The notes under the pieces were generated by a model. It worked only from the letters and a program-made list of their open reading frames with translations. It was not told the origin of the DNA and ran no database searches. A stretch of 64,000 nucleotides of DNA from Octopus bimaculoides (Eukaryota). The stretch spans positions 59,471,415 to 59,535,414 of the forward strand of contig NC_068993.1 in the NCBI RefSeq assembly GCF_001194135.2, read 5' to 3'. Shown piece after piece: positions 9,910-62,883 of the stretch. The position numbers and the translations under genes are program-made. Numbering within the stretch: position 1 is the first letter of the stretch; each line of letters begins with the position of its first letter.

Positions 9910-9964
9910 TATTAAGTGAAAGTAGTTTTGATTGAGGATTGTTTATTTTGGGAGTCTTTCATGA

Positions 9965-11081: not shown

Positions 11082-11400
11082 GAGGACTGGTGAAACCGGA
11101 TGGCAACACCAGGCTCCAGTCTAATTTGGCAGAGTTTCTACAGCTGGATGTCCTTCCTAACGCCAACCACTCAGAGAGTGTAGTGGGTGCTTTTACGTGT
11201 CACCCGCACGAAAACGGCCACGCTCGAAATGGTGTCTTTTATGTGCCACCCGCACAAGCCAGTCCAGGGGCACTGGCAATGATCTCGCTCGAAAATCCTA
11301 CGGGAGCCAGTCAGGCGGTACTGGCAACGGCCACGCTCAAAATGGTGCATCTCATGTGCCACCCACACAAGAACCAGTCCAGGGACACTGGCAACGATCT
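11082..11400 (-). mobile_element. RTE LINE 3' UTR (young copy)
   Basis: First ~150 bp nearly identical to 35023-35171. Confidence 0.85.
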
Positions 11401-12208: not shown

Positions 12209-12213
12209 GAGAG

Positions 12214-23951: not shown

Positions 23952-23999
23952 TCTAAGTGTATCCATATTTTGTTTTTCTATTTATGATAATAAATATTT

Positions 24000-24114
24000 A
24001 TTCGGATTCTGTTACTTCCGCCAAGCATCTACCATAATCATTTCCGGCGAAGAACTTTGTCGCATATTAATCGAATTTATCAAAGAAATTATAAAGGTAA
24101 AAAGAAAAGTAAGT
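24000..24114 (+). promoter_or_regulatory. Putative promoter/exon 1 of ZNF E, donor GTAAGT at 24109
   Basis: ACTTCCGCC at 24014 and TTTCCGGCG; conserved among paralogs. Confidence 0.7.
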
Positions 24115-24585
24115 ATTTATAATGTTTAAATCGATATTAAATATTTCCAGGACGGATCTTCGGAATAACTGTGGTTTCTTCACGGGAAATGAAAAAGGAG
24201 CGAAGAATTGGGAAGGTTTTTCTTTTTCCTTCATCATTCAATATTTTATGATAGTCCGATGAAATTTCTATCAGAATCGTAATTTCCTTTGTATCAAACA
24301 CAGGAATACTACGAAAAAGTGGGGTGGTTTTCGAAATAGCAGTCACTAATAAAATGGAATTTCTCGAAGATTTTTTTGTTATTTTTTGGTATTTTTACCT
24401 TTTGTAGAATCTCAAAGTAGATGTAAATCTCTTTAAAAAAGAAAAAAGAAAAATATTCCGTATCTTTGCTTTTTTGAAATGTCTCACTCTCTCTGTCCTT
24501 CTCAATTACGATTTCGGAATATCTGCCATGATTCTCATGAATTAATTTTCTTCCCAATTTCCTGTCTATTCTGAAATATTTACAC

Positions 24586-28602: not shown

Positions 28603-29569
28603 TGGTCCAACATTGACAATGGACATAAAAAAAATATTGATGATAATAATTCCAATTTTGTTTAAGAGAAATTTTTTAAAAAAAATGTTATGTTTGGCTG
28701 TTATTTCTAGCATGTGAGGAGACCTTCTAGGCTTAACTTCATGTGCTGGTTGAAAATCACCTAAAAATGATTCTGGGGTCGACACATTCGATTAAAAAAT
28801 TCTCAAAGTGATGCCCCAGCATGGCCAGTCTAATGATTACAAATAAAAAGTTTAAAAAAAAAAAGCAAAAATAACCGTGGGGCTTTTGTCCACTTTCACA
28901 CTTTAACTACGGGGTTTTAGTCCGGATCCCGTTTATGATATGTAGTAAATAGGAAAGGGTAAGGTAAAGACCCCCTTCGGTTATGAATGACCATGGGGTT
29001 GGTCCTAGAAAGTTCCCTCCGAGGCACAAGTCCGGGCAAGGTTGTTTATGGAAGACCAGCAGTCACACATGCATATCAGCCTCCGCTCAACACGCTTATC
29101 CAAGGGAATGTCAAAATCCGATACAGATTGGCACCAGTGACATTGCAACTCATTTCTACAGCTGAGTGAACTGCAGCAACGTGAAATAAAGTGTCTTGCT
29201 CAAGAACACAACTCACAGCTCGTTGCAGGAATCGAGCTTACTACCTCATGATTGTGGTATACATCATAAATATATTGTATGTATTAATAGCAAACACATA
29301 CACATCATTTTGGCATTGTGTAGCGTGGAATATATTAATGAACTCCAATCAAGATTGAATGGTATAAACTTGTGGGAAATCTGACTGCTATTTCTAGCAG
29401 ATCGTTCAAGTACGTAGAGGTTCCATTGCACCTACATCGTTGTTTAGTCCAAGAAAAACCACGACTGAGCAGTTTTGCCTATCCAGTGCCGGTCAATTGA
29501 CAGTTAACAGAATAATTACGAAACTATGTGTATCCATATTTTGGTTTTCTATTTATTATAATAAATGTT

Positions 29570-29686
29570 TATCCGGATTCTGTTACTTCCGCCTAGCATC
29601 TTACCATAATCATTTCCGGCGACGAACTTTGTCGCATGTTAATCGAATTTATCAAAGAAAATAGAAAGGTAAAAGGAAAAGTAAGT
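29570..29686 (+). promoter_or_regulatory. Putative promoter/exon 1 of ZNF F, donor GTAAGT at 29681
   Basis: ACTTCCGCC at 29585 and TTTCCGGCG at 29613. Confidence 0.7.
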
Positions 29687-32128
29687 ATTTATAGTGTTTA
29701 AATCGATGTTAAATATTTTCAGGACGGATCTTCGGAATAACTGTTCCCCATGAGGGGAATGAAAAGAGCAAAGAACTGGGAGGGTTCTTTCTTCCCCTTC
29801 ATGAATTTAATATATTACGATTGTCCGCCAAAATTTCTATCAGAATCGTAATTTCCTTTGTATCAAACAAAGAAATACTACAAGAAAGTGGGGTGGCTTT
29901 CGAATTAGCTCTCAGTAATAAAATAGAATTTCTCAGACATTTCACCATTTTATAGAATCTCACTTCGCAAAACATATTAATCGCCTTCTTAAAAGAAACA
30001 AAAAGGAAAAAATTCAGTATCTTTGCTTTTTTGAAATGTCCCAGTCTTTCCGTCCTTCTCAATTACTCCTTCGGAATAGCTGCCACGATTCATATGGTTT
30101 TTTTTTTTTTTTTTCAATCTTCTGTCTATTCTGAAATATTTACAATTCACAATAGAAATAAAATAGAAAACAAAACCTACCAACTGCACCTCACTTTTCA
30201 TCGCTCATCGCACCTTCCACTATCTGTATGTTTTACTTGTTTCAGTCATTAGACTGCCGCCAGGTTGGGGCATCGACTTCAAAGGTTTAGTCGAACAAAT
30301 CAATCCCAGCAATTATTTTTTGATGCCTGGTACTTATTATATCGGTTACTGTTTCCCCAACCGTTAAGTTACGATGACGTAAACAGATCGACTTCAGTTG
30401 TGAAGCGGTGGTGAAACACACGCATGCATACATACCTATACACGACCGGCTTCTTTCAGTTTGCGTGTATCTAATCTTTTCATAAAGCATTTATCGGTCG
30501 TGTATTGGTATGTATGCATGCGTGTGTTTCTGCTGCACTGAAACACGTTTTCTCAGAGTGCTATTTGCAAGATATTTTATCGAAGACTTACACAAGTGGA
30601 TGTGTGAAGAATATGATTGGAATTTTGAAAGTAGTATCTATAAAATGTTAATTTCAGTTGTTTAAAAAGTAGAAAATAATATTTGTAACTGAAGAAACGT
30701 ATAATATCCTTGCTATCCACATGGCTGCTGAATGGCTTTCAACACCCAAAAGTTGTTCCTTGTCTTGAAGAGTTGTGGAGATCATAGAATGAGACAACTG
30801 GTGATTACATGTGATAGTGTGGACAGTTCCCATCATGAAAATGATGATATATCAACTTGTGTATTATAATATTGTTTCTTTTTTTCCGTTTTAATGCCAA
30901 GGCATTCAGACAGAATTGAAGCAGATTTTCTATTATCTGCAACCTTCACTTGTTTCCAAGTAAGGTAATACTGTCCCTTTACTGGTCATGTTCACAGAAG
31001 ACTAGAAACATATGACAGTGACTCTTGCTAGGCAAGCAGACAATTATCCTTTTCGGAGATGATGTATTGTTAAAATATATTTCTCTGCTCTGTTCTATAT
31101 GTAAAATTATAGAGATACACTGGAGGAATTTGGTTGTTCTGGTCAAGGTTTCACTTCTACAATTTATAGATATAGTAATGAAATGAAATTTATGCTGTTT
31201 ATGTATCCTTGAAATCTTATACTGTTTTCCTTATTATTTCAGAATCAGAGCTGAAACTGGCAGAAACAATTTCGTTTTTTATACAACAGAAGCATCATCA
31301 ATATTTATCATCTTTTAAAGACAAAAGATGTTATACTGAACAAATATAACCATTTACATATAAATTTAATGAATTACGTTNNNNNNNNNNNNNNNNNNNN
31401 NNNNNNNNNNNNNNNNNNNNNNNNNNNNNNNNNNNNNNNNNNNNNNNNNNNNNNNNNNNNNNNNNNNNNNNNNNNNNNNNNNNNNNNNNNNNNNNNNNNN
31501 NNNNNNNNNNNNNNNNNNNNNNNNNNNNNNNNNNNNNNNNNNNNNNNNNNNNNNNNNNNNNNNNNNNNNNNNNNNNNNNNNNNNNNNNNNNNNNNNNNNN
31601 NNNNNNNNNNNNNNNNNNNNNNNNNNNNNNNNNNNNNNNNNNNNNNNNNNNNNNNNNNNNNNNNNNNNNNNNNNNNNNNNNNNNNNNNNNNNNNNNNNNN
31701 NNNNNNNNNNNNNNNNNNNNNNNNNNNNNNNNNNNNNNNNNNNNNNNNNNNNNNNNNNNNNNNNNNNNNNNNNNNNNNNNNNNNNNNNNNNNNNNNNNNN
31801 NNNNNNNNNNNNNNNNNNNNNNNNNNNNNNNNNNNNNNNNNNNNNNNNNNNNNNNNNNNNNNNNNNNNNNNNNNNNNNNNNNNNNNNNNNNNNNNNNNNN
31901 NNNNNNNNNNNNNNNNNNNNNNNNNNNNNNNNNNNNNNNNNNNNNNNNNNNNNNNNNNNNNNNNNNNNNNNNNNNNNNNNNNNNNNNNNNNNNNNNNNNN
32001 NNNNNNNNNNNNNNNNNNNNNNNNNNNNNNNNNNNNNNNNNNNNNNNNNNNNNNNNNNNNNNNNNNNNNNNNNNNNNNNNNNNNNNNNNNNNNNNNNNNN
32101 NNNNNNNNNNNNNNNNNNNNNNNNNNNN

Positions 32129-32987
32129 GAGAGAAACCATATCAGTGTGATATGTGCAGTAAATCATTCGCTAAAAGTACTAACTTAACTGATCACAAAC
32201 GCATTCATACTGGAGAAAAACCATATCACTGTGATATCTGTGGTAAATCATTCAATCAAAATAACCAGTTAATTAAACACATACGCATTCATACAGGAGA
32301 AAAACCCTATCACTGTGACGCCTGTGACAAATCATTCTCTCGAAATGATGAGTTAACTGCACACAAACACGTTCATACAGGAGAGAAACCTTATAGGTGC
32401 GATATCTGTGGTAAATCATATACTCTAAATAATGCTTTGACTGTACACAAACGTATTCATACTGGAGAAAAACGATTTATTTGTGATATTTGTGGTCAAG
32501 CATTTATTCGAAATTCTTCTTTAGAAGGACATAAAAGAATTCATACTGGAGAAAAACTATATCATTGTGATATTTGTGGTAAAGCATTTACACATAGTCC
32601 TGCTGTAACTGTACACAAACGCATTCATACAAGAGAAAAACCATATCATTGTGATATTTGTGGTAAATCATTCCTTCAAAGTGGTTGCTTGCGTGATCAC
32701 AAACGTATTCATACTGGAGAAAAACCATATCATTGTGATGTCTGTGGTAAATCATTTATTCAGAGTAACGATTTAAAGGGACATGTACGTATTCACACTG
32801 GAGAAAAACCATATCATTGTGATATCTGTGGTAAATCATTCTCTCAACGTGCTGCTGTAACTGTTCACAAACGTGTTCATACCAGAGAAACGCCATATCA
32901 CTGTGATATCTGTGGTAAATCATTCTCTCAACTTACTGCTATAACAGTACATAAACGTGTTCATACCAGAGAAAAGCCATTTCATTG
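32129..32987 (+). CDS. C2H2 zinc finger protein, copy F (partial; 10 fingers visible, both ends in gaps)
   Basis: Open frame of tandem fingers between two N gaps; conserved exon-2 acceptor at 31242. Confidence 0.9.
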
Positions 32988-34953
32988 NNNNNNNNNNNNN
33001 NNNNNNNNNNNNNNNNNNNNNNNNNNNNNNNNNNNNNNNNNNNNNNNNNNNNNNNNNNNNNNNNNNNNNNNNNNNNNNNNNNNNNNNNNNNNNNNNNNNN
33101 NNNNNNNNNNNNNNNNNNNNNNNNNNNNNNNNNNNNNNNNNNNNNNNNNNNNNNNNNNNNNNNNNNNNNNNNNNNNNNNNNNNNNNNNNNNNNNNNNNNN
33201 NNNNNNNNNNNNNNNNNNNNNNNNNNNNNNNNNNNNNNNNNNNNNNNNNNNNNNNNNNNNNNNNNNNNNNNNNNNNNNNNNNNNNNNNNNNNNNNNNNNN
33301 NNNNNNNNNNNNNNNNNNNNNNNNNNNNNNNNNNNNNNNNNNNNNNNNNNNNNNNNNNNNNNNNNNNNNNNNNNNNNNNNNNNNNNNNNNNNNNNNNNNN
33401 NNNNNNNNNNNNNNNNNNNNNNNNNNNNNNNNNNNNNNNNNNNNNNNNNNNNNNNNNNNNNNNNNNNNNNNNNNNNNNNNNNNNNNNNNNNNNNNNNNNN
33501 NNNNNNNNNNNNNNNNNNNNNNNNNNATATTCTTTCAGGTATATTATATTGATTCTTGTTTTATCATTATTGTATTTTATCCAGAGATTAATTCTGTTGT
33601 TGGTAATACCTATAATTTTATCTATGACATAGTTTATGATGAAAATTAATGTTAATTTGTCATTGTAGTATTAAACTTTACATAATAACAAAATTAGTGG
33701 GGTAATGTTTTGAATTATCGTCATCAATGCTGGAATGTGTTGGAGCACATCATCATCATCATCAGCGTCATTGAATGATGATAATGATGATTGTCATCTC
33801 GAGCATTTTGTCATTTCAAGTGTAAATTCCAAAGTTCTGGCTGCGAGTCTTTATCAATTTTTATAACAATTTAAACTCTAAATAAAACTGGTTTACTATG
33901 AAATTATCCTGTTTTTGTTTTTGTATTTTCTAAACTGATTTTCACCAACTGCTTACTTATAACCCTATATAATTTATTGACACTATTTGATACAAGATAT
34001 GATCTGATGTGAATGAGATGTAAATAATAGGATGATATTGTAGATGAAATGGTGATGTTGGTGGCTTTGTAGTGGAGATTTGATATAGGTTGATGAGAGC
34101 CAAGTTAGAGGCTGTCTAAGGACGATATTTCCCATTCTCAGATAATATTACTTTCAAATTTTGGCACAAGTCTGGCAACTTCAGGGGAGTTGGGGGTAAG
34201 TCGACTACATTGAAGCCAGAGTTCAGCTGGTACTTATTTTATCGACCTGAAATGATGAAAGCAAAGTTATACTCAGTAGAAATTGAACCCAGAACATAAA
34301 GGCAGATGAAATGTTGCTGATCATTTTGCCTGTCAGATCACTCCATTTTTCCGCTCTTTCCAAACCATAATTTATAGACAGTGAAAGGATGAAAGGTAAA
34401 GTCAACCTAGGTTATATTTAAACTCAGATGTGCTGGTGGCACATGTAAAAGGCATCCGTGTTGGTGATATGTAAAAAGCACCCAATACACTCTGGAGTGA
34501 TTGACAGTTGGAAGAGCACCCAGCCACATCCATTTGTGCATACATGCTTTGTGTCTTTCCAGCCTTCTCAAATTCTCTGCATTTGAAGTAAATGTCTAAG
34601 AACCATGCAGCATTGCAGTTCCAACACAAGCATCATACAATCTGCCCTTCACCATTAGGAAAAATATTGCTGTTGTTAACAGTGGTAATAGCGCTGAACT
34701 TTCTCCAAATAGTACTTACTCTAAAGCTATACTTTCAGAACAACTACCTGTTCTGCTAATTACACCTCTAAGGTAACAAAAGCTATCAAAGAAAACGACT
34801 TTTGTTCACTTTTCCGTGGCCATGGCCAATTTCGACATTCTTTAACAGTAAGTTTACTTATTTTTCTCGTTATTTTCCTCTTCAATTTTTATTTACTTTT
34901 TTAAACACCTTATACTGAAAGTACCCATATATATATATATATATATATATATA

Positions 34954-35935
34954 TCATCATCATCATCATCATCATCGTTTAACGTCCGCTTTCCATGCTA
35001 GCATGGGTTGGACGATTTGACTGAGGACTGGTGAAACCGGATGGCAACACCAGGCTCCAGTTTGATTTGGCAGAGTTTCTACAGCTGGATGCCCTTCCTA
35101 ACGCCAACCACTCAGAGAGTGTAGTGGGTGCTTTTACGTGTCACCCGCACGAAAACGGCCACGCTCGAAATNNNNNNNNNNNNNNNNNNNNNNNNNNNNN
35201 NNNNNNNNNNNNNNNNNNNNNNNNNNNNNNNNNNNNNNNNNNNNNNNNNNNNNNNNNNNNNNNNNNNNNNNNNNNNNNNNNNNNNNNNNNNNNNNNNNNN
35301 NNNNNNNNNNNNNNNNNNNNNNNNNNNNNNNNNNNNNNNNNNNNNNNNNNNNNNNNNNNNNNNNNNNNNNNNNNNNNNNNNNNNNNNNNNNNNNNNNNNN
35401 NNNNNNNNNNNNNNNNNNNNNNNNNNNNNNNNNNNNNNNNNNNNNNNNNNNNNNNNNNNNNNNNNNNNNNNNNNNNNNNNNNNNNNNNNNNNNNNNNNNN
35501 NNNNNNNNNNNNNNNNNNNNNNNNNNNNNNNNNNNNNNNNNNNNNNNNNNNNNNNNNNNNNNNNNNNNNNNNNNNNNNNNNNNNNNNNNNNNNNNNNNNN
35601 NNNNNNNNNNNNNNNNNNNNNNNNNNNNNNNNNNNNNNNNNNNNNNNNNNNNNNNNNNNNNNNNNNNNNNNNNNNNNNNNNNNNNNNNNNNNNNNNNNNN
35701 NNNNNNNNNNNNNNNNNNNNNNNNNNNNNNNNNNNNNNNNNNNNNNNNNNNNNNNNNNNNNNNNNNNNNNNNNNNNNNNNNNNNNNNNNNNNNCCACATG
35801 TCCATACCAGCGCAATCGTCTCTCTTGCACGCCACAACTGATGCTTCTAATGTTCAGCTTTTCTCTCAAGATACTTACACTCTGACGGGTATTCACATTG
35901 ACATTACACATCCAACGGAGCATACTGGCTTCACG
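34954..35935 (-). mobile_element. Young 5'-truncated RTE LINE with (GAT)n tail, spanning a gap
   Basis: EASMLRWMCNVNVNTRQSVSILREKLNIRSISCGVQERRLRWYGHV on the right; 3' end gcatggaaagcggacgttaaacgatgatgat on the left. Confidence 0.9.
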
Positions 35936-36674
35936 GAGCATAATACAAAGAATATATATACATGTATACACACATATATGTACATACTTACATCTACATG
36001 TGTATATATGCATATCAGGGTACAGGACGTTAGAACAATGAACTACAGACAACGGAACGAACACATAGGAAAACGGAAAGCCACTTGGAATATTCCTTCA
36101 TCAGCTGTCTCTATTCTATATATATATATATATTGAAAGAGTACCTATATATATACGACGGGCTTCTTTCAGTTTCCGTCTACCATGTCCACTCTCAAGG
36201 CTTTGGTCAGGCTGAGGCTATAGTAGAAGACAGTTGTCCAAAGTGCCACGCAATGGGACTGAACACGGAGCCATGTGATTGGTATAGAAGCTACTTACCA
36301 TGCATCCACTCCTGCGCCTATTGTACGTATTAATAAAAAGTACGTACACAGCATTGCGGCATTGTATAGCGTGGAATGACATTAACGAACATAGTCCCCC
36401 AATCAAGATTGAATGGTATAACTTAAGATAAAATTGACAGTAGAACAACTACGAAACTATGTGTAATATTAAATCTCTAAAAGTATCCATATTCTGTTTT
36501 TCTATTTATGATAATAAATGTTATGGATCTGTTTATTAATTGGTTTTGCAAGAATCCAGATGTGAAATCGCGTGTTGTTTTTGTTTCTTTTCGTTTTTTT
36601 CTTTTTGCCAAATAAACACACGCACTATATATTTTTTGTTCACTCGTGTATTATTGTTATAATAATAAATGTTT

Positions 36675-36790
36675 ATCCGGATTCTGTTACTTCCGCCTAG
36701 CATCTTACCATAATCATTTCCGGCGAAGAACTTTGTCGCATGTTAATTGAATTTAGCAAAGAAAATATAAAGGTAAAAGGAAAAGTAAGT
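36675..36790 (+). promoter_or_regulatory. Putative promoter/exon 1 of ZNF G, donor GTAAGT at 36785
   Basis: ACTTCCGCC at 36689 and TTTCCGGCG. Confidence 0.7.
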
Positions 36791-37480
36791 ATTTATAGTG
36801 TTTAAATCGATATAAAATATTTTCAATGCGGATCTTCGGAATAACTGTTGTTTCTCCACGGGAAATGAAAAGAGCAAAAACGTGGGAGGGTTTTTTCTTC
36901 CCCTTCATGATTTTCATAGATTACGATTGTCCGCCAAAATTTCTATCAGAATCGTAATTTCCTTTGTATCAAACATAGGAATACTACGAAAAAAAGAAAT
37001 GGGTTGGCTTTCGAAATAGCTGTTTCTGGTAAAATAGAATTGCTCTGAGTTTTTTTTTTTGTTTCATTTGTTGTATTTTCATAATTATTTAGCATCGCAC
37101 TTTGCAAAACAGATATTAAAAAGAAAAGAAATTGAGTATCTTTGCTTTTTTGAAATGTCTCAGTCTCTTTGTCCCTCTCTATTACACCTTCGGAATAGCT
37201 GCCACGATTCTCATGAATTAATTTTCTTTCCGATTTTCCGTCTGTCCTNNNNNNNNNNNNNNNNNNNNNNNNNNNNNNNNNNNNNNNNNNNNNNNNNNNN
37301 NNNNNNNNNNNNNNNNNNNNNNNNNNNNNNNNNNNNNNNNNNNNNNNNNNNNNNNNNNNNNNNNNNNNNNNNNNNNNNNNNNNNNNNNNNNNNNNNNNNN
37401 NNNNNNNNNNNNNNNNNNNNNNNNNNNNNNNNNNNNNNNNNNNNNNNNNNNNNNNNNNNNNNNNNNNNNNNNNNNNNNNA

Positions 37481-42050: not shown

Positions 42051-42089
42051 ATAAACCTTCTTGCTACTGGTGCAAGGCCTGATATTCTG

Positions 42090-42810
42090 GGGAAGGGGTT
42101 CAGTTGAATATATCTGTGATGCATGTAACCTTTTAATCTGCAACACTAACTCCAGGAAGCCAGACAGCCACCTGGTAACCTATCAATCAGGTGACTCTGC
42201 AAGCCAGATTGATTTCATCCTCATCAGACAGCGGGATGCAGGGTTGCTCTTAAATACAAAGACCCTCCCGGGTGAAGAATGTAACCCCCAGCATAAACTA
42301 GTCATTAGTGGTTTTAGACTCGAGGCCAGAAGGATGCCAAGAAGCAAACCAATCCAGAAAAGAAGGATTTGGAAGCTAAAGAATCCTTCACATGGTCACA
42401 GATTGAGGGACATCCACATCAAGAAATTTGATGTGAGGGAGGAGGAGCTACAGACTTCGGACATAGAAGGTAGCTGGAAATTCCTACGGGACAGCTTAAT
42501 GAGTGCCACAGACCAAGTCTGTGGATGGTGCTAAGTCAATTCTATAGATAGAGTAATGTGGTGGTGTATTAATACAGTAGACAAAGCCATTAGAGCAAAG
42601 AAACAGGCCTGGAAAGCCTGGAAGAGTGGGGGTAGCAGGGAACTGTACCAGATAGCCAGAAGAGAGGCTGGGCGACAGGTATACATAACCAAGGGAGAAG
42701 CAGAAAATAAGTTTGCCAATGTCCAGCGACATGTGGACCAAAGAACTGAAGAATTTCAGATTGCAAGACAGTGTGTGAGAGAAAATTGTGATGTCACCAC
42801 CAACATCCCC
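42090..42810 (+). mobile_element. RTE LINE AP-endonuclease C-terminus and linker fragment
   Basis: LVTYQSGDSASQIDFILIR...EECNPQHKLVI, then WW...VDKAIRAKKQAWKAWK. Confidence 0.85.
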
Positions 42811-42849
42811 ACACACCGATGATCTTTGTTAGCTCAGAAAAAAGGTGGG

Positions 42850-43990
42850 ATCTGAATTGCCTGCCATGGTCTGTGGTAATGGTGGTAGGAAAGCTGTAGC
42901 ACAATATACATCCTGATACCAGGGCTTACGCTACAGATTCAGCAGAAATGTCAGTTAATGGAATCGCTTCAGGCCATAGGCTGAAGCGGTCAATGCAAAT
43001 CAAGATATATGTAAACCCCTGACTGACAGGCCAGGGTCCCACAAGATCAATATGTATGTGAGAAAAACAAGCATCAAGGGAGTTAAGAGAACAGAGAGTT
43101 GTACGGATGTGCTTGTGTAACTTAAACTTCTGGCACTGAAGACAAGAACAAGACCATTCAGGAATTTCATGTCTCATGTTTGGCTGAAGAATCTAGCCAT
43201 AATGAGTTTTACTTAAGCCACAATGCCAGGATGAGCAAGATTGTGCAAGGCGTTGAAAACCACTCTACAATGTTTCTCCGGAACAAAAGAATGAGGTGAT
43301 TGTTTTAACATGTTACACAAGGTGTTCTTGTCAGCAGTCAGTATAGGTAGGTACTTGAATTTAGAAGTCAAAAATTCTGTAGATGTGGTGTCTAAGGTGT
43401 CCAAAAGGGACTGGTCTGAGGCTGAAATAGTCAAATCAATTGCAGAAGTGGATGCCAAGGAATTGGTTGGCAAATGGAACAAATCAGCAGCAGCACTATT
43501 CTGACTTCCTGAGATATGTTGAATGTTGCTGATAAACTGGGAAACGAAATCAAGATGTCTCGTCTTCCTCGGCAAATATTTCTCAGGCTTGGACCATAAG
43601 GAACGTAAAAGGTTTACAATACATGTAGATAGTAAAATATCTTCATTCAACGAGATGACGAACGTGTTTCACTGACAGGTAAATCACTAATAATTTGTGC
43701 CCAAAAGTACTATAACGAGTTTCAACTAGTTTTAGCTGCCAAGACAAGAGAAGAATGCCAAAGGTTGCATATGCTTTTAGAGAAATAATACAAGCAGCTC
43801 GAATATCCTCGAGAAAACCTTTATGCGACAACCAATCTTTGATGAAAAATGCATGATTATGGTGATGTGCACGGGGAGTAGCTGCTGTGCTTAGTGACCT
43901 GCTTTGGCATTTCTCTGACTTGAATATGACCACAGTTGAATGTACTTCCTGGCATTCTGGCCAAAGTGATGATGATACCAACATAAGTTT
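42850..43990 (-). mobile_element. Degenerate Ty3/Gypsy pol fragment (RNase H end, integrase Zn-binding region and core start)
   Basis: RYSTFGHKLLVIYLSVKH; RHLDFVSQF; HNLAHPG; CLQCQ..K...HIHIDLVGPWPVSQGFTYILICIDRFSLWPEAIPL. Confidence 0.85.
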
Positions 43991-44344
43991 AACAAAGAGG
44001 CAGGAGATAAAGAGTATTGCCTAAGGGAGGATGACCAACTGAATACTCTCCAGCTTGGCAAATTCTGTGCAGCGCATAAGATATTTGCCTGCTGAGTGAG
44101 TTCCAGCTTGCTCTGGAGTGTTGCCGATTGTGTGGGGTCACACTGCTAGAATAGGAAGGGCTGCTCAGTCATGGCTTTTCTTGGACTAAACAACAACGGA
44201 GGAGCAATAGAACCTCTACATACTTGCACGATCTGCTAGAAACAAATGTCAAATTTCCTCAAGTTATACTAATCAGTTTTGATTGGAGGAATATGTTCAT
44301 TAATGTATTCCATGCTATACAATGCCGTGATGCTGTGTAGGCAG

Positions 44345-45335: not shown

Positions 45336-46529
45336 TCATGGAAGAATACAGACATGAATAGCTAAATCATCCTGTTGAGAGAATGATTTACCACAGATAT
45401 TACACGGATATGAATTTTCTCCCATATGAATACATTTGTGCTTATTCAATAGGTTACTGTATGAGAATGATTTACCACAGATATCACAATGATATGGCGT
45501 TTCTCTGGTATGAACACGTTTGTGTACAGTTACAGCAGTACTTTGAGAAAATGATTTACCACAGATATCACAATGAAATGGCTTTTCCCCAGTATGAATA
45601 CGTACATGTCCCTTTAAATCGTTACTCTGAATAAATGATTTACCACAGATTTCACAATGATATGGCTTTTCTCCAGTATGAACACGTTTATGTGCATTTA
45701 CAGCAGTAAGTTGAGAGAATGATGTGCCACAAATATCACAATGATATGGTTTTTCTCTTGTATGAATGCGCATGTGTACAGTTACAGCAGGTCTATGTGT
45801 AAACGCTTTACCACAAATATCACAATGATATAGTTTTCCTCCAGTATGAATGCTTTTATGATCCTCTAAATCACGACTTTTAAGAAATGCTTTGCCACAA
45901 ATATCACAATGATATCGTTTTTCTCCAGTATGAATACGTTTGTGTACAGTCAAAGCATTATTTACAGGGAACGACTTACCACAGATATCACACCAATATG
46001 GTTTCTCTCCTGTATGAATATGTTTGTGTGTAGTTAACTCATCGTTTCGAGAGAATGATTTGTCACAGACATCACAGTGATAGGGTTTTTCTCCTGTATG
46101 AATGCGTATGTGTTTAATTAACTGGTTATTTTGATTGAATGATTTACCACAGATATCACAATGATATGGTTTTTCTCCAGTATGAATGCGTTTGTGATCA
46201 GTTAAGTTAGTACTTTTAGCGAATGCTTTAGTGCACATATCACACTGATATGGTTTCTCTCCTGTATGAATACGTCTGTGTGTAGTTAAAATATCTTTAC
46301 GCATGAATGACTGACCACAGATATCACACTGATATGGTTTCTCTCCTGTATGAACACGCACATGAACAGGTAATTCACCTTTTCTAGTGAACCTTTTACC
46401 ACAAAAATCACAGTGATATGGTTTCTCTCCCGTATGAATACGTATATGAGCAGTTAAATTACTTCTTGAAGTTAATGACTTGTTACAGATAACACATTCA
46501 TATGAAGACTTTGCTAAGTTCTTTGCCAT
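45336..46529 (-). CDS. C2H2 zinc finger protein, copy H (13 fingers + degenerate terminal finger, 397 aa)
   Basis: Intact minus-strand ORF from the conserved ATG ([12 protein letters not shown]). Confidence 0.95.
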   Translation of the reverse strand: MAKNLAKSSYECVICNKSLTSRSNLTAHIRIHTGEKPYHCDFCGKRFTRKGELPVHVRVHTGEKPYQCDICGQSFMRKDILTTHRRIHTGEKPYQCDMCTKAFAKSTNLTDHKRIHTGEKPYHCDICGKSFNQNNQLIKHIRIHTGEKPYHCDVCDKSFSRNDELTTHKHIHTGEKPYWCDICGKSFPVNNALTVHKRIHTGEKRYHCDICGKAFLKSRDLEDHKSIHTGGKLYHCDICGKAFTHRPAVTVHMRIHTREKPYHCDICGTSFSQLTAVNAHKRVHTGEKPYHCEICGKSFIQSNDLKGHVRIHTGEKPFHCDICGKSFSQSTAVTVHKRVHTRETPYHCDICGKSFSYSNLLNKHKCIHMGENSYPCNICGKSFSQQDDLAIHVCILP

Positions 46530-49162
46530 CTTTTTAGAACGAAAAAAATAACAGTCATTTATTTCATTGAATAATTTTTCTTCTCTCACCACAATATATA
46601 TGTTTGCTGCTTTCCTTTCTATAATTTATTTCTAACAAATATTCCTTCTGCTATATGTCCATCATCTGGATGCAAAGTGCTTCATAAATCTACCTGAATA
46701 TATTTAAAATGCAGAATTGTATTGGACTCATTCCAGAGAATGACACACACAAATGTTGCTTAATAATCTTACCCAGAGGAAATCTTTCAACATAATTCAT
46801 TAAATTTATATGTAAATGGTTATATTTGTTCAGTATAACATCTTTTCTCCTTAAAAGATGATAAATATTGATGATGTTTCTGTTGTATAATAAACAAAAA
46901 TGTTTCTGCCAGTTTCAGCTCTGATTCTGAAAAATAAGGAAAACAGTATAAGATTTCAAGAATGCATAAACAGCATAAATTTCATTTCATTACTATACTT
47001 ATAAATTGTAGAAGTGAAACCTTGACCAGAACAACTGAATTCCTCCAGTGTATCTCTATAATTTTACATATAGAACAGAGCAGAGAAATATATTTTAACA
47101 ATACATCATCTCCTAAAAGGATAACTGTCTGCTTGCCTAGCAAGAGTCACTGCGATGCACGAAGTGTCATTTGCTTCCAGTCTTCTGACCAGTAAAGGGA
47201 CAGTATTATCTTACTTGGAAACAAGTGAAGGTTGCAGACAATAGAAAATCTGCCTCAATTCTGTCTGAACCCTTGGACATTAAGACGAAGAAAAAAAAAG
47301 CACAATGTTATAATATACTAAACAAGTTTATAAATCATTTTCGTGGGAGGCTTTCCATACTGTCAAAATGCTTTGCTTCTATGATTTTCCTGATACAAAC
47401 CCTTTTGTCTCTTATGGCTTGCAGGAGTGCACTGTGTACATCCATATTATATTATGGCACATATAATACTGTGCATACATCATTCAACTACAGTAGTAAT
47501 TGAATAATATTCTGAAGGCCACAATTTGTTCCCATGCAGCATTTTTCTGAGCTTGTCGCTAATTCAGTTCTTAACTGAACTGAAAACTGTTAATATTTTC
47601 GAAGAGGGCTGGTTCCTAGCTACATTTTGGCATAAACATCATTGAGATTTGTCGAGCAGAAAAAAGTTTATATCAAAATTTGTAGCAACACTATTGTATA
47701 ATTAACTATTTAATTTTAAAAACAAACTATATTTTAATTAAGCCTAAATAATAGAGCTCAATTCGAAGAACTTCATGGTATCAATCTCATGCAATGAAGT
47801 TTTAAAAGAAAAAGGGTTATGAGTGTTTGTTTCAGAAATTTGAGGGTGATAATATAGTTCTATACTTTTTATGAATATAGTTCTAAAAGGGGACTTTTAA
47901 TATATGTCACGGGTGTTACTGAGGTAAGGAAAAAATTATCAACGACACCACTAATTGACATGTTATTAATTAGCATAACAGCATTGCATGGAAAAAAACG
48001 TGGATTACATGGGAAAATGTGAGTAAGAGAAATAATACCACTGATCTAGCGATTAAATAAATGTTTTTAGGCTTACCGAAGTCATGCCAGTCTACGAAGT
48101 CAATCTGTGGTGTTTGCTGTTGTTGGCCGATAGTGCTGTCTGTGAAAGATGTTTCTCACCATGTAAACAGACGAGCGGATGACGCATGTGTTTATTGTAT
48201 TTGATGAGGAAAGTAAAAAGGTCAGATGGGAACCATTGATCTAGCGATTACTTGTATGTTTTTAGGCTTGATGTATGTGTTTATTGTACTTGAAGATGTA
48301 TGCAGGCTTGCCGCATATCCTGTGCATACATTTTTGCAATGGGATGTATCACCCATCAACAAATGTGTAGTGCACGCTATTAGATGGTGCACCAAGCATT
48401 CCACCTACAGAATAGGCTAACAGTAAGGTAGCCACATAATTTTGTAACAGTTATCTCTACGTACAGGATAATAGAGTAGCTTGACCCACAAATATTATTC
48501 ATGAAATACTAGGGTCAGCTTTTATACGGAGTCTAAGGAAAAAATATAAATGGGCCGAAAAATAGGGGATCGACTTTTACTCTAGTATATACGATAGATC
48601 GTGAAAGGTGCGATGAAGTGTGAAGTGAAGTTGGTAGTTTTTGTTTATTACTTTATCTTATTTCTAATGTGAATTCTAAATATTTCAGAACAGACGGGAA
48701 ATTGGAAAGAAAATTAATTCATGTGAATCGTGGCAGCTTTGCCGAAAGTGTAATTGAGAGAGGGACAAAGAGACTGAGAAATTTCAAAAAAGCAAAGATA
48801 CTGAATATTTTTTTCTTTTTACTTTTTTTGCAAGGTGATTGATATCTGTTTTACGAAGTGAGATTCTATAAAATGGTGAAAATACTCGAAAAATAACGGA
48901 AAGAAATCTCTGAGAAATTCTATTTTATTACTGAGAGTTAATTCGAAAGCCACCCCACTTTTTTAGTAGTATTTTTGTGTTTGATACAAAGGAAATTACG
49001 ATTCTGATAGAAATTTTGGCGGACAATCGTAATATATTAAATTCATGAAGGGGTAGAAAAAACCTTCCCAGTTCTTTGCTCTTTTCATTTCCCGTGGAGA
49101 AACGACGGTTATTCCGAAGATCCGTCCTGAAAATATTTAATATCAATTTAAATACTATAAAT

Positions 49163-49280
49163 ACTTACTTTTCCTTTTACCTTTATAATTTCTTTGATAA
49201 ATTCGATTAACATGCGAGAAAGTTCTATGCTGAAAATGATTATGGTAAGATGCTGGGCGGAAGTAACAGAATTCCGGATA
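49163..49280 (-). promoter_or_regulatory. Putative promoter/exon 1 of ZNF H, donor at 49168
   Basis: GGCGGAAGT at 49256-49264; second ETS-like site mutated. Confidence 0.7.
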
Positions 49281-49727
49281 AATATTTTCGTAAATAGAAA
49301 AACCGAAATATGCCGCAAATCGTTCAGTTTGGTAATTTTAAAAAAGTAAATAAAATCTAAGGGGGAGATAAGCAGTAAAAGAAGTAACTTTTTACACAGC
49401 ATAAACACTGGTGATAGCCTTCGCACACACACACACATTCGGATACCACCCTTTCACATACACACAAATATACTCACAATGCTGATTTTTTTTTCACCCC
49501 TTCCTTTCTTATTCAGCTATCACCCTTTCCTGTCTCATTCATATGTAGTGACGGAGAAAAACAGAAAATACTACACGCACGCTTTGCCACTTTGTCTCCC
49601 TCGCTGCTATTACTTTCGCTCACGACTTCTCCTTCACCAAAGTACTATTTTCTCTCCTCTCCCTTCAAATATACTACTTCTACTCCATCCCACATGATTT
49701 TGGACAAACATGTATATATATATATAC

Positions 49728-50030
49728 GGTACTACTAAAACAGCACGGTCCCGAACGCGCAGTCGCGCGTCCGCTCTAGCTAGTCTTGAGTGGTCGATCC
49801 TAACCCTAACCCTATCCCTAACCCTATCCCTATCCCTAACCCTAACCCTATCCCTAACCCTATCCCTATCCCTAACCCTAACCCTAACCCTATCCCTAAC
49901 CCGCGTGTGCAAATGAATACATGGTTAGGGTTAGGGTTAGGGTTAGGGTTAGGGTTAGGATCGACCACTCACGACTAGCTAGCGCGGACGCGCGACTGCG
50001 CGTTCGGGACCGTGCTGCTTTAGTAGTACC
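49728..50030. mobile_element. 303-bp palindromic MITE, GG...CC termini, 9-bp TSD, internal telomere-type arrays (Merlin- or Mutator-like)
   Basis: TSD tatatatac at 49719-49727 and 50031-50039; 73-bp TIRs with 3 mismatches; 17 TAACCC/TATCCC units on the left, (TTAGGG)5+TTAGG on the right. Confidence 0.9.
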
Positions 50031-50289
50031 TATATATACAAAGCTAGATAAAAATACTAGGCTCATTATATTATTATACTGAGAAATAGTTTCGTAGTTA
50101 TTCTCTTAACAACTATCGATTGACCAGCACTGAATATGTAGTGCTGGTCAGCCATGGTTTCTCTTGGACTAAACAATGACGTAGGAGCAATGGAACCTCT
50201 ACATACTTACATGATCTGATAGAAATAACTGTCAAATTTCCCTCAAGTTATACCATTCAATCTTGATACTACCTACACCTTTTCTACAG

Positions 50290-51360
50290 ATCGAGCAGGG
50301 TCATCTATCTGAAGAGATTTGTGATTTGTCTGCCTTTCTGCTTACTAAGACTTTGGATTTTGCTAGATTGACTCTAAGGCATTTCAATTCTAGACTTTGC
50401 TTCCACACCTGAAACGTCTCCTCTAGTTCTAGTAGTGATTCAGCTATTTACAACAAGGTCATCAGCATAGAGGAGCTCCCAGGGGCATCCTGTTTTAAAT
50501 TCCCCTGTTATTGCCAGGAGGACTATGATGAATAAGAGGATGAGGACTGATCATTGGTGGACCCCTACTCCTACCGGAAATTCTTCACTATACTCGTTGC
50601 CAACCCTATGGTGCTGCTATTCCAGCCATTGGGTGTGATTCCTTCATGTATCACCTGGTTGACTAGACTATAGCCTACACTGCCAAATATTTTAAGCATC
50701 TCCGCAGTGACTGCTGGTGGGTTGGGGACTTTCCTTGTCTTCATACTCTTAATTGCTTTATCTACCAAAGTACAGTCAATATGGATAGCTGGTCCCTCTG
50801 TTGGGTTGATATTTGGCAGAATATTTCTCCCATTCATTCTCTTCATTTAGCAACCTTTCATAGTCTCCAAGTCTCTCTCTTCGCAGCATCATTAAATGTA
50901 AGTGAGCCATCATCTATGCAGACACATTTCTCTCCTATGAAATCACTATTCTCTTTCACACAATGTCTTGCAACACGAAACACTTTAAGTCTTTGGTCTT
51001 CATAACACAGAACATTGGCAAATTTTTTCTTATCTGGTTAAGTAAACCTGTCACCTAGCTTCCCTTCCAGTGATCTGATAACAGTTCCCTGCCACAATCA
51101 CTCTTCCATGCTTGTTTCTTTTCCCTAACAGCCCTGTCAACTACATTGTTCCGCTGCCACGTTACCTTAGGTTGAGAGCGAACTTTGCACAGATCTGATC
51201 AATAGCCCTCAACAGGTCGTCTCATAGGAACCTCCAGTTGTCTTCCACATTGTGATGGTATATCCTCCTCTTTTCTTTTTATCTAAATCTCTGTTCACTC
51301 ACAGGATCCTTAAACTTCCAGATCCTTCTTTTCCATGCTGGTCGTCTTCTGGATACACAC
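50290..51360 (-). mobile_element. Degenerate RTE LINE RT fragment
   Basis: LLAITGEFKTGCPWELLYADDLV with YADD at 50458-50469; KAIKSMK...VTAEMLK upstream. Confidence 0.85.
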
Positions 51361-52071: not shown

Positions 52072-52443
<372 letters not shown>

Positions 52444-53586: not shown

Positions 53587-53992
53587 AAAAAGTCATATAA
53601 ATCGTGGGAGCTTTCCCGAAAGCGTAATTGAGGGGGACAGAGAGACTGAGACATTTCAAAAGAGCAAAGATACTGAATATTTTTCTTTTTTGTTCTCTTA
53701 GAAGGCGATTGATATGTTTTGCAAAGTAACGGAAAGAAATCTCTGAGGAATTCTATTTTATTAGTGACGACTATTCCGAAAGCCACCCCACTTTTTCGTA
53801 GTATTTCTGTGTTTGATACAAAGGAAATTACGATTCTGATAGAAATTTTGGCGGACAATCGTAATCTATGAAAATCATGAAGGGGAAGAAAAACCCTCCC
53901 AATTCTTTGCTCTTTTCATTCCTCATGAAGAAACGACGGTTATTCCGAAGATCCGTCTTGAAAATATTAATATCGATTTAAACACTATAAAT

Positions 53993-54110
53993 ACTTACTT
54001 TTCTTTTTACCTTTCTATTTTCTTTGATAAATTCGATTAACATGCGACAAAGTTCGTCGCCGGAAATGATTATGGTAAGGTGCTAGGCGGAAGTAACAGA
54101 ATCCGGATAA
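53993..54110 (-). promoter_or_regulatory. Putative promoter/exon 1 of ZNF I, donor at 53998
   Basis: GGCGGAAGT at 54086-54094 and CGCCGGAAA intact. Confidence 0.7.
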
Positions 54111-55527
54111 ACATTTATTATAATAAACAGAAAACCAAAATATGGATACATTTAGAGTTTTATTATTACACATAGTTTCGTAGTTATTCTGTTAACAACT
54201 ATGGATTTATGTTGTTTGTTCCTGCTCGAGCCATGCCTGGTTCATAAGAGCCGGTTTCCCTGTTTCATAGGCGTATAGATTCCCCACCTGGACGGGTTGC
54301 CTGTCCGTCGCAGGTGAGCTGCTAGATGCAGCGGGAGAGATAGAAAGTTGTGGTGAAAGTGCGAATTCGTACTCTCGTTTTGAATGAAAAGAAAAACAGA
54401 AAATCAATGCCATTCTCAGTGTAGTTTAAGGAAGATTTGACTGCTATTTCTAGCAGGTCTAGAGACCACGTAAAGGTTTCCTCCTTCTTGTCTTTCCTGA
54501 TTTCCATGACAACAGACAGGTCCTACCTAAACTACACTGGCAATAAACGTCTTTGATTGGCATATATTACAGAACTGTCTGTGTTTGTGAATTCTTTATT
54601 AATCTCTAGATTAGTCAAAAGAAATTAAGCCGTAACAAAAAGATCAATTGATTTCAGTAATATTTATTGGTATTTCAGGATTCAGTATACATAATATTTA
54701 AGGAGTCTGATAATATCAGGAACCGCCACTGTTATTTCAGGCTGAAAATAGATTTTGCAAGAATGAATTAAGGAGAGTGGAGACAAAAAAAAAATCACAC
54801 CTTTGATAGATTTACTAGAAATTAATAAGAAAGGGGCATTTTTACTGCCATCCTCAGTATTCAATCAACGGACTATAACTAATTTATTACGTTCATGAGA
54901 AGATCTGTGATATGGAAGAGGCAAGTATCCAGGTTCCACTAATTCTCAACATACCAAATATGTCGGTCTTCAGGCTGGTATGTTGAGAATACTCCAGAAT
55001 GTGTGATCTGATTATGTATGTATGTGTGTGCGTACGCATGTGCCTGTGTATGTATCGTTGTTTAACTCGAGATTTGTATAGAAACTCATTTGGAGGGACC
55101 GTTTTTCATTCGTGGGGCTATACTTTACCTGCAACTTAGTTTAATACCACCAAATGGATGATGGCTACCTTTAGTAAGGACCATTCCTTTCTAAGTAATG
55201 GAGTCAAGGTTGAAGACACTTTCTTACTTTTTCCCTACAAGTCTTAGAAGTTTTGGAGTCTTGGGCGCTGTATTTATTTTTCTGACTAACTCAGGAAAGA
55301 ACAAAAAAAAAAAAAAATTAAGGTTTGGTTTGAAAGAGATTTGGTGTCTATTTCTAGCAGTGTGAATGGTCTCATTGAGTTTCCTTCTTTATTCAGTCTA
55401 CGCTATTAATGAGTGTGTTATGCAAATCGAATGCATATATATATATATACACGCGTAAAAATCGAACAATGGGAATGAGTGCTCAACACAGCATCGGTGG
55501 ATAAAAATTCTTTATTTGTATATTTTA

Positions 55528-56364: not shown

Positions 56365-56586
56365 CTGAGAGTTAAATTTAAAATTTATAAGGTTTTCTAA
56401 CGAAAGCAAGGGAGACTACTCCTATTTACTGCGCCAGAGTTGATGTCGTTAAACCATTTAGTGGTCGCCGAATTGTCTGGTCCACCATGTGACTCAAACC
56501 AGAAGAAAATGAATGAGTTTTGGTTATTATTCAATAACAAGCTTTATTTATAAACTATGGCTGCCTCACTGCACAAGATTATTTAA

Positions 56587-57188
56587 GGATCTATCTTAAA
56601 ACGGGGGCGCCAGTTTTCATTTATGTTTTATGTAGTGTTTTTGGTACGGAAAGACTTTCAAACTTCGTATACTTATCTATTTTGTGTTATAGAACAGNNN
56701 NNNNNNNNNNNNNNNNNNNNNNNNNNNNNNNNNNNNNNNNNNNNNNNNNNNNNNNNNNNNNNNNNNNNNNNNNNNNNNNNNNNNNNNNNGTTAACCGTAA
56801 CCGTAACCCTAACCCTAAAACTAACCCTAACTCTAGAATCCGAACTCTAAAATTGTTACACACACAGATACGCACAGCGTAATTTATTATATAAACAATA
56901 TATGCGTATAAATTACGATTAAACCGGATGAAATATGTCACAGGGAATAACATTTTTATGACCGCCCAGCAGTAACTCTATTGGGCTGAATAGATGTCAG
57001 TGATTGGTTGAAATTACAGAAATACGACAACTTTAACATGGAATAACTTGCGAATTCCTTTTTTTTGTTAAGAAGACTAAGAGTAAAAGATGTTTTATAT
57101 GACACATTCTACCAGTGTCCCAAGTTTCAAAGTGTTTCGTTAGTGTTTCGTTAAGAACATACTGGCGCCCCCGTTTTAAAATAGATCC
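56587..57188. mobile_element. ~600-bp MITE, GG...CC termini, 8-bp TSD, internal TAACCC-type repeats
   Basis: TSD ttatttaa at 56579-56586 and 57189-57196; TIR GGATCTAT(C/T)TTAAAACGGGGGCGCCAGT; taaccg/taaccc units at 56791-56832 beside a gap. Confidence 0.85.
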
Positions 57189-57559
57189 TTATTTAATTTT
57201 ACTAATGATGAAGATTTTAGACAAACTGCTAAAACAATTATTTAATCTTCACATCTTTTGAGAACTCTTTCTTTTCGTCGATATACTGTCACGGACTCAT
57301 ACACAACACATACGTGTGTGTGTGTGTGTGTGTGTGAGCAGGCGTAAGTGTATACCTACTTTTATGCTTACAAGTATAAACCAGAGTCTAGCTGCATCCA
57401 TTTATGTCATAATCGTGACTTTGTAGTTCGATAAATGAGGTCCAGTAAAAAAATGTATCATACAATAAGTATGATCGACTAAAATCGTTGATGACACGCC
57501 TCAGCATGATTACTTTCGAAAAAATGAAACCGGTAAAAGATTAAAGGAATCTATCTCAC

Positions 57560-57698: not shown

Positions 57699-58442
57699 CT
57701 GGAATACGAAATAAAAGTTCATGTTAAATTCTTTGCTATTGCTGTTGTTGTTGTTGTTGTTTAGGCCCTATCTGTGTCAATTCTAACCAAGTAGACTTTT
57801 GACGAAAGGCATTCCAGAAATGACCACCCTGCCATTTTGCATATCAGGAAGTACATTGTCATAATGTAATGTTCTTTATTTAAAATGACTGAGTGTAAAT
57901 TAAAGGAGATTTCACTGCTGTTTCTAAAGAGAGTGAGTTACCGCACAAACGGTCAGATAACCAATCTCTGCTTTGTTTTTCAAAGATAAAAAAACCCCCC
58001 ACCTAACCCTAACCCTAACGACTCAAGTGACCTTTTAGAATTTTCCTCATTGATATGGAGGTAGCAGAACTCCAATGTTATGCTTTTCATGCCTTTCCAA
58101 ACCACGTTAATGGCACAAGTAAAATGACTGCAAATAAAACTAAATCCGTCTCACATGTTCTGACTGTATGAGAAATTTCTGTTTGCACTGAAGACATCTT
58201 CTCCGTCGAGTTATTCTTCTCAAGTAAATATGTCAGATATCTATCATGTTGAGGGATATTGCCTTTCAGGAAAAGTTGTCTCCTTTCTCAATGACGGGTA
58301 GTCATGATAGGCACACTCGGTTTTGTATATTTGTACCCCAGCGTCACTTTGATGGCACGCACTACTCTCTCGCTCAATAATGATAATAATTATTATTTCA
58401 AATTTTGGTACAAGGATAGCAGTTTAGGAGGAGGGGGGGGGC

Positions 58443-62393: not shown

Positions 62394-62883
62394 NNNNNNN
62401 NNNNNNNNNNNNNNNNNNNNNNNNNNNNNNNNNNNNNNNNNNNNNNNNNNNNNNNNNNNNNNNNNNNNNNNNNNNNNNNNNNNNNNNNNNNNNNNNNNNN
62501 NNNNNNNNNNNNNNNNNNNNNNNNNNNNNNNNNNNNNNNNNNNNNNNNNNNNNNNNNNNNNNNNNNNNNNNNNNNNNNNNNNNNNNNNNNNNNNNNNNNN
62601 NNNNNNNNNNNNNNNNNNNNNNNNNNNNNNNNNNNNNNNNNNNNNNNNNNNNNNNNNNNNNNNNNNNNNNNNNNNNNNNNNNNNNNNNNNNNNNNNNNNN
62701 NNNNNNNNNNNNNNNNNNNNNNNNNNNNNNNNNNNNNNNNNNNNNNNNNNNNNNNNNNNNNNNNNNNNNNNNNNNNNNNNNNNNNNNNNNNNNNNNNNNN
62801 NNNNNNNNNNNNNNNNNNNNNNNNNNNNNNNNNNNNNNNNNNNNNNNNNNNNATATAGAGAGAAATAAACGAAATATACATAC

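Follow-up and report, generated by a model that had tools for sequence, protein, structure and literature searches.

A foldback-type miniature transposon with Merlin-type ends carries the host telomere repeat in Octopus bimaculoides

Merlin DNA transposons are defined by a conserved terminal 5'-GG, target site duplications (TSDs) of 8 or 9 bp, and terminal inverted repeats (TIRs) of 24-462 bp, and Octopus bimaculoides has been singled out as unusually rich in them, with 191 transposase sequences (PMC8101967). Here we describe a palindromic element of 303 bp at positions 49728-50030 of a 64-kb stretch of O. bimaculoides DNA (the window), which is a C2H2 zinc-finger (ZNF) gene cluster. The element is a real, cleanly bounded foldback-type MITE (a transposable element of the miniature inverted-repeat class) with Merlin-type ends, and it carries the host telomere repeat as cargo. 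The comparison DNA was 31 kb of O. vulgaris (L001, a stretch of OX597839.1, to which coordinates prefixed "L001:" refer), giving 95 kb of octopod DNA in total. A further stretch, L002, proved to be unrelated; it had no repeats in common with the window and contained no interstitial telomeric sequence.

The usual explanation of interstitial telomeric sequences (ITSs) is that chromosomes fused or that a break was repaired. Arms of tandem sub-repeats around a unique center, together with 9-bp TSDs, are known from the Foldback (FB) elements of Drosophila, to which the present element is alike by description, not by sequence comparison. Insertion of short ITSs during double-strand-break (DSB) repair is documented in mammals (PMC7215372), and the Athena/Coprina Penelope-like elements (PLEs) and MoTeR are retroelements in which a short telomeric stretch at one end primes at chromosome ends (PMC4522978). 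TTAGGG is the only cephalopod telomere motif determined experimentally, and the species used was an octopus; the TTAGGG units read as telomeric in a preliminary description of this DNA are thus copies of the host telomere motif (PMC13218726).

Boundaries and internal layout of the element

The element begins with GGTAC at 49728 and ends with GTACC at 50030, as the preliminary description had it, and is made up of the following parts:

49719-49727, unstranded: left TSD copy TATATATAC, identical to 50031-50039
49728-49798, plus strand: left TIR, unique part of 71 nt, starting 5'-GGTAC, CpG observed/expected ratio (o/e) 1.5, complementary to 49960-50030 at 68/71 positions
49799-49902, plus strand: left array, 17 CCTAAC/CCTATC units (C-strand telomeric hexamer and its TATCCC variant)
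49903-49922, unstranded: central spacer GCGTGTGCAAATGAATACAT, unique, 20 nt, the hairpin loop
49923-49959, plus strand: right array, 6.2 GGTTAG units, that is, 5 perfect TTAGGG, G-strand
49960-50030, minus strand: right TIR, ending GTACC-3'
50031-50039, unstranded: right TSD copy TATATATAC, identical to 49719-49727

When the boundaries were fixed by the TIRs, nine was the sole duplication length that gave a match (TATATATAC on both sides), which upholds the 9-bp TSD first proposed. The left flank ends in TAC and the right flank begins with TAT, and no duplication shorter than 9 bp fits the TIR boundaries; the sole alternative register takes the 8-bp TATATATA as the repeat and leaves the C at 49727 as an extra base. 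The insertion site is a (TA)n microsatellite. Because the 9-mer contains a C that is not part of that repeat, the TA microsatellite by itself does not account for the duplication.

The two TIRs differ at three paired positions (49740/50018, A/G; 49775/49983, T/G; 49786/49972, T/G). Three mismatches had also been counted in the preliminary description, but its TIR length of 73 bp holds only when the CC that opens the array is taken as part of the TIR, and its 22-bp spacer reflects a different register of the 20-nt loop. The TIRs are indeed CpG-rich as described, with a CpG o/e of 1.5-1.6 against 0.64 in the window, the overall GC content of which is 33%. A 42-nt TIR probe run on the window matched the two arms only, with 0 matches expected in shuffles, and the single-strand hairpin of the element is calculated at -128 kcal/mol (z = -26). 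Thus, the pairing of the TIRs and the hairpin are not due to chance.

The arrays continue the palindrome inward, so that the inverted arms, arrays included, pair across 108 nt at 94%. The left array holds 17.3 hexamer units, either CCTAAC or CCTATC, by Tandem Repeats Finder, and units 1-6 (49799-49834) are repeated exactly at 49835-49870 as units 7-12, which makes a 36-bp higher-order repeat with an exact period-36 run of 52 nt; TATCCC variants account for nearly half of this array. The 17 units, the 36-bp duplication, and the (TTAGGG)5 on the right were all reported correctly at the outset. Array length differs threefold between the arms (tracts of 37-104 bp), and the layout is inward-facing, with (CCCTAA)n next to the left TIR and (TTAGGG)n next to the right one. 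All five canonical G-quadruplex (G4) motifs of the window, defined as G3N1-7 x4, fall within the element at 49810-49948, one on the plus strand (right array) and four on the minus strand (left array), in agreement with the early claim of G4 motifs on both strands.

The open reading frames (ORFs) of the element are translations of the repeats only, and it has no coding capacity. Since it is small and non-coding, with perfect-type TIRs and a clean TSD, the element is a non-autonomous TIR transposon, and the palindromic MITE-like structure claimed for it at first is borne out. It has the features of a MITE, being 303 bp long, non-coding, TIR-bounded, and TSD-flanked; the dispersed copies that are essential to a MITE are putative in its case, with one copy seen in the 95 kb. 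The translated arm ORFs had 0 protein matches in a collection that is without octopus ORF calls of that kind. A 23-mer of the TIR core had 0 matches in viral and metagenome contigs, which is uninformative, as a known multi-copy octopus block also had 0. A true telomere or fusion relic is ruled out by the (CCCTAA)n...(TTAGGG)n orientation, the interstitial position, the tract lengths of 37-104 bp, and the bounding TIRs and TSD.

Two explanations other than a mobile element bear on this structure. The first is a one-off local palindrome, for example a telomeric insertion at DSB repair followed by inverted duplication, with the flanking repeat incidental. It would agree with the mammalian ITS insertions cited above, with the single TIR copy seen in the 64-kb window and the 31 kb of O. 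vulgaris, and with a (TA)n microsatellite as the site, where short direct repeats are common. Yet the 9-mer, with its non-repeat C, meets the terminal base of each TIR without a gap; the 71-nt arms, rich in GC and CpG, look foreign in surroundings of 33% GC; telomerase extension of broken ends would, from the polarity of telomerase, give the opposite orientation; and like-ended elements of the same TSD class with telomeric arrays are multi-copy in octopus. We regard a local palindrome as very improbable.

The second is a hairpin-RNA or microRNA (miRNA)-like gene, instead of or besides a selfish element, which the extreme hairpin could suggest. In a permissive Rfam scan, full-length matches to miRNA precursors scored 36-39 bits (mir-3099, mir-1258, and MIR7723; 49870-49959), but the gathering scores are 74-200 bits, there was no Rfam match at gathering level, and a 108-nt perfect-type stem of simple repeats is unlike a miRNA. 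The sub-threshold matches are due to a generic telomere-repeat hairpin, and we give an RNA gene next to no credence.

A second family with telomere-like arrays

The window is octopod DNA as judged from its repeats, since LINE (long interspersed element) and SINE (short interspersed element)-like sequences match O. vulgaris OX597839.1: the LINE fragment 42113-42797 has 89.5% DNA identity to that chromosome and the SINE-like repeats ~92%. Overall, 37 repeat matches are in common, at 75-92% identity. The window and L001 contain further elements with GG...CC ends and telomere-like arrays:

56587-57188 of the window, unstranded: second TIR element with GG...CC termini and 8-bp TSD TTATTTAA at 56579-56586 / 57189-57196
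L001:25108-25580, O. vulgaris: element with GG...CC ends, 29-nt TIR, 8-bp TSD AAAGATGT, and a TTAGRG array at 25210-25279, nested inside another copy of its own family
L001:28620-28970, O. vulgaris: copy that begins at the array, immediately after a (GAT)n tract, and is 86% identical to L001:25108-25580 from the array to the right TIR

The window element has a 28-nt TIR, beyond which its inverted arms, now diverged, extend a further 110 nt or more and enter an assembly gap. Inverted homology past the TIR was compared with the right arm of the element and with the O. vulgaris copy, and in both cases it was reached in 0/1000 shuffles. A CCCTAA-like array at 56790-56835 adjoins the gap (56698-56789), which was probably caused by the foldback and repeat structure. 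Both O. vulgaris copies contain an internal (TTAGGG)n followed by GTGGGG, and the array and adjoining G-run are identical between them at 21/21 positions. The window element is 64% identical to the O. vulgaris copies, with strongly conserved blocks. Because the TIRs of the 303-bp element have no significant similarity to those of these elements, the two are classed, by this comparison of TIRs, as two families.

Blocks conserved across species in the second family lie at 57004-57030 and 57075-57125 of the window and at L001 25026-25050 and 25395-25420. One of them contains a CCAAT-box-like core, CAnTGATTGGTTGAAAT, possibly a regulatory motif or one bound by a transposase. At 58001-58020 there is also a short interstitial telomeric tract, CTAACCCTAACCCTAAC, preceded by C6 and A7 runs; it was tried as a relative of either TIR family, and the alignment was unconvincing.

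If any locus with at least two perfect telomeric units is counted as telomere-like, the window and L001 together (95 kb) have five, and four of these are located inside GG...CC TIR elements of two families. This supports the early suggestion that the 303-bp element seeds interstitial telomeric sequence, and GG...CC TIR elements probably help to scatter telomere-like sequence through the octopus genome.

The same recurrence brings in a functional explanation, by which the arrays are kept as a telomere-repeat module for the use of the element or the host. The repeat might bind a TTAGGG-binding protein of the Myb/shelterin type or a transposase, a G4 or i-motif might aid excision or integration, or the insertions might serve as putative regulatory or chromatin-organizing ITSs near genes such as ZNF H. 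In line with this, an internal host hexamer is found in two unrelated-looking TIR families and two octopus species, the O. vulgaris copies match perfectly over the array and G-run while being 86% alike otherwise, the array is still present in the window relative at 64% identity, and every canonical G4 of the window is within the 303-bp element, on both strands. On the other hand, nearly half of the left array is TATCCC by local duplication, where selection for TTAGGG sites predicts otherwise, and the arms differ threefold in array length. The orientation of the array relative to the conserved unit also differs between the window and O. vulgaris copies. Flank homology, by which the array of the window copy would be assigned to its left arm, did not reach significance; a conserved orientation, 5'-GG-arm-(CCCTAA)n inward, was accordingly downgraded. 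With only two independent families, the orientation pattern has no statistical weight and the case for a module is weakened, and microsatellite-like tracts can persist through slippage without function. We therefore consider a functional module unlikely.

Affiliation and proposed origin

The terminal GG, the 9-bp TSD, and the TIR of 71 nt (108 nt with the array units) place the 303-bp element within the structural definition of Merlin, and the second family, with 8-bp TSDs, falls within it as well. Other superfamilies were compared in the same way. hAT is ruled out, with 8-bp TSDs and short non-GG TIRs against a 9-bp TSD, a 71-nt TIR, and a GG terminus; Tc1/mariner, piggyBac, and PIF/Harbinger are ruled out since a TA, TTAA, or 3-bp TSD does not fit the TIR boundaries.

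The Merlin assignment made at first thus agrees with the terminal GG, the 8/9-bp TSD, and the TIR length, although a Mutator-like/Foldback family of the MULE-NOF type (MULE, Mutator-like element) is still a live alternative. The 9-bp TSD lies in the MULE-NOF range of 9-11 bp, and 108-nt arms at 94% identity, with tandem repeats inward of a unique terminal domain and a center of 20 nt, reproduce the FB architecture. Furthermore, recently active elements in O. vulgaris comprise 21 Mutator families and only 2 Merlin families, besides 49 unclassified TIR families and 65 MITE families (PMC13282606). However, a conserved terminal GG is the stated hallmark of Merlin, the 8-bp TSDs of the second telomere-array family suit Merlin better, and O. 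bimaculoides is the species singled out for Merlin abundance. A Mutator-like origin is in our view unlikely, yet it deserves to be kept in sight.

The reading that we favor, with moderate confidence, is that the element is a foldback-type MITE of Merlin type, a DNA transposon of the non-autonomous cut-and-paste kind, with telomere arrays as passengers. The element would have inserted into a TA-rich site with duplication of 9 bp, mobilized in trans by a Merlin (IS1595-like DDE) transposase binding the 71-nt TIRs, as the TSD and end type suggest; a MULE/Foldback-type enzyme would be the second choice. The two arrays are the inner parts of one palindromic pair of arms around the 20-nt loop, and a single internal telomere-like tract was most likely duplicated when the element turned foldback. 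Slippage or unequal exchange would then have lengthened the left copy and made it diverge, and the TATCCC variant and the exact 36-bp repeat would have come about in this way. Like foldback sub-repeats, the arrays may serve to lengthen the hairpin-forming arms, with a portable interstitial telomeric and G4 block as a by-product of each insertion. What we infer from this structure is that the element moves in trans, which superfamily it belongs to, how the array events followed one another, and that a dedicated telomere function is lacking.

The inward-facing layout is what results if one arm, (TTAGGG)n-TIR, is made palindromic. The preliminary description likened the layout to a miniature chromosome, and its geometry was right, but it is the trivial outcome of duplicating one arm in inverted form. 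Telomerase extends 3' ends, and its healing of aborted gap-repair ends, two of them growing inward, was considered as the source of the arrays. The product would be TIR-(TTAGGG)n...(CCCTAA)n-TIR, with both arrays turned the other way round from those seen. Given this mismatch, and given that the left array holds variants in an exact 36-bp repeat, a signature of slippage or unequal exchange, direct synthesis of the present arrays by telomerase is unlikely. An ancestor may have had a seed tract that came from telomerase or an ITS, and break repair is also a source of internally deleted transposons.

Several observations weigh against the transposon reading or parts of it. There is no second copy of the TIR in the window or the 31 kb of O. 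vulgaris, nor was an empty site seen for that element. The mobile-element ORFs of the window and L001 are those of retroelements, with none for a transposase from any DNA-transposon superfamily, and we know of no autonomous partner for these TIRs. The TIRs of the two families are dissimilar, and a common superfamily is suggested only by the GG ends and TSD length. Finally, the persistence of the arrays in a second family diverged to 64% identity could mean functional maintenance and not passenger status.

Genomic setting and comparison with known systems

The 303-bp element is located upstream of a conserved ZNF block and within another insertion. The features of this region are:

45336-46592, minus strand: ZNF H, a C2H2 zinc-finger ORF, downstream of the conserved block
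48700-49312, minus strand: conserved promoter-like block of the ZNF units, 82-84% to four paralogs
29535-30110 (minus), 23964-24559 (minus), 36667-37235 (minus), and 53590-54144 (plus): paralogous blocks of ~600 bp, upstream of each ZNF gene
49258-49264: ETS-type core CGGAAGT within the conserved block, 464 bp from the element
49334-50085 (outer limits approximate), unstranded: lineage-specific block of ~750 bp, missing from the paralogous ZNF units
49334-49727 and 50031-50085: ~450-bp host insertion, absent in the paralogous units
50574-50846, minus strand: N-terminal fragment of a LINE reverse transcriptase, adjoining the element on its other side (50.57-50.85 kb)

The conserved block is 2.7 kb upstream of the ZNF H ORF, and the element is 464 bp further upstream, which agrees with the ~460 bp from an ETS-like site given in the preliminary description. 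The ~600-bp block is probably a shared promoter or first exon of tandemly duplicated ZNF units; promoter function of 48700-49312 is putative and is suggested by position and conservation. The placement of the element 464 bp upstream of such a block is a further point in favor of a functional module. Rewiring of the promoter and telomere-protein binding, both put forward in the preliminary description, are conjectures that the present analysis does not support. The block also holds GGCGGAAGT...TCCGG. The ZNF H protein has matches of ~50% identity from all Metazoa.

In the paralogs at ~29.5 kb (minus) and ~54.1 kb (plus), the counterparts of 49312 and 50066-50086 are just 8-14 bp apart, so the unit with the element contains ~750 bp of extra DNA. 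This consists of the ~450-bp host insertion and, nested in it, the 303-bp element with its own TSD. The element had been described as inserted upstream of the ZNF H promoter, and the upstream position stands, but the DNA that received it is the ~450-bp insertion and not ancestral upstream DNA. The host insertion is flanked by an imperfect direct repeat of ~13 bp, CAAATCGTTCAGT / GAAATAGTTTCGT, and it has no second copy in the window or L001.

The remainder of the window is a draft-quality assembly with many N-gaps, and a tRNA scan found none. A truncated ZNF ORF at 52072-52419 (minus), 115 aa with three fingers then a stop and an N-terminal motif identical to that of ZNF H, is probably a pseudogene or partial duplicate. 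Three ZNF ORFs had no identical protein on record, and one of these runs across an N-gap. Long multi-frame ORFs over N-gaps (e.g., 31369-33552, 9916-11124, and 35031-36136) were rejected as artifacts of N translation, and low GC values at the gaps are likewise artifactual. Other features are:

2476-2805, minus strand: mariner-like, DDE-looking fragment, no Pfam hit
11903-12238, minus strand: RVT_1 fragment
42055-42819, plus strand: LINE ORF2 region, 89.5% DNA identity to O. vulgaris
43216-44020, minus strand: retroelement RNaseH/integrase-like fragment
10314-11081, 31381-32128, 32988-33526, 35172-35793, 62394-62852, and others: large N-gaps of the assembly

If the family of the 303-bp element is multi-copy, it would provide a transposon route by which interstitial telomeric repeats and strand-symmetric G4 blocks are seeded across a cephalopod genome. 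The recurrence in two TIR families and two octopus species raises the question of whether a DNA transposon exploits telomere-binding proteins or the repeat structure for its mobility. A wider reading, which we find quite doubtful, is that octopods harbor a guild of GG-terminated non-autonomous transposons with 8-9-bp TSDs (Merlin-type), in which the telomere repeat is a maintained internal module and which are the main source of ITSs and G4s. Under this wider reading the repeat would have been adopted independently or ancestrally, would be bound by a putative telomere-repeat-binding protein or transposase, and would extend to sites beside the promoters of expanded C2H2-ZNF clusters. The interest of these elements rises if the arrays are maintained genome-wide and if they account for most octopus ITSs. 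There is also a practical side: assembly gaps occur at palindromic elements filled with repeats, the second element being an example, and in TTAGGG-based scaffolding of octopus chromosomes such elements could pass for telomere signals or relics of fusion.

In the literature searched, no TIR elements with inward-facing telomeric arrays were found, no Merlin elements have been described with an interior of inverted host-telomere arrays, and the TIR or family block occurs as a literal string in no paper; the curated repeat paper for O. vulgaris does not mention telomeric repeats (PMC13282606). Mobile elements that carry host telomeric repeats are nonetheless known. The ciliate elements TBE1 of Oxytricha and Tel-1 of Tetrahymena do so, but at the outermost tips of the TIRs and not internally. 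In the Athena/Coprina PLEs and MoTeR, host telomeric repeats are likewise a structural part of the mobile element. None of these combines inward-facing arrays between TIRs with an 8-9-bp TSD. The ITSs of DSB repair share a short (TTAGGG)n at a non-terminal site (PMC7215372); they are in a single orientation without TIRs or TSDs, whereas here a TIR element carries the repeat as cargo, in either orientation.

Among DNA transposons, Ac/Ds of the hAT superfamily also has hexamer copies in inverted orientation in both subterminal regions. These AAACGG hexamers bind the Ac transposase and thereby offer a model of a possible role of the arrays. They differ from the arrays described here in being dispersed and unrelated to telomeres, in elements with 8-bp TSDs, short TIRs, and non-GG termini. 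Merlin MITEs, which are related in eukaryotes to the bacterial IS1016/IS1595 (Feschotte 2004, summarized in PMC8101967), share the 5'-GG, the 8/9-bp TSD, the TIR range, the non-coding interior, and a Merlin-rich host; they differ in that the TIRs of the 303-bp element are not linked to any Merlin transposase or autonomous partner. FB/MULE-NOF elements of Drosophila have element-specific sub-repeats of 10-31 bp and arms of hundreds to thousands of bp, unlike the short arms of host hexamers seen here. In their 9-bp TSD, their arms of tandem sub-repeats inward of a unique terminal domain, their short unique center, and even their unequal arm lengths, they are nevertheless alike.

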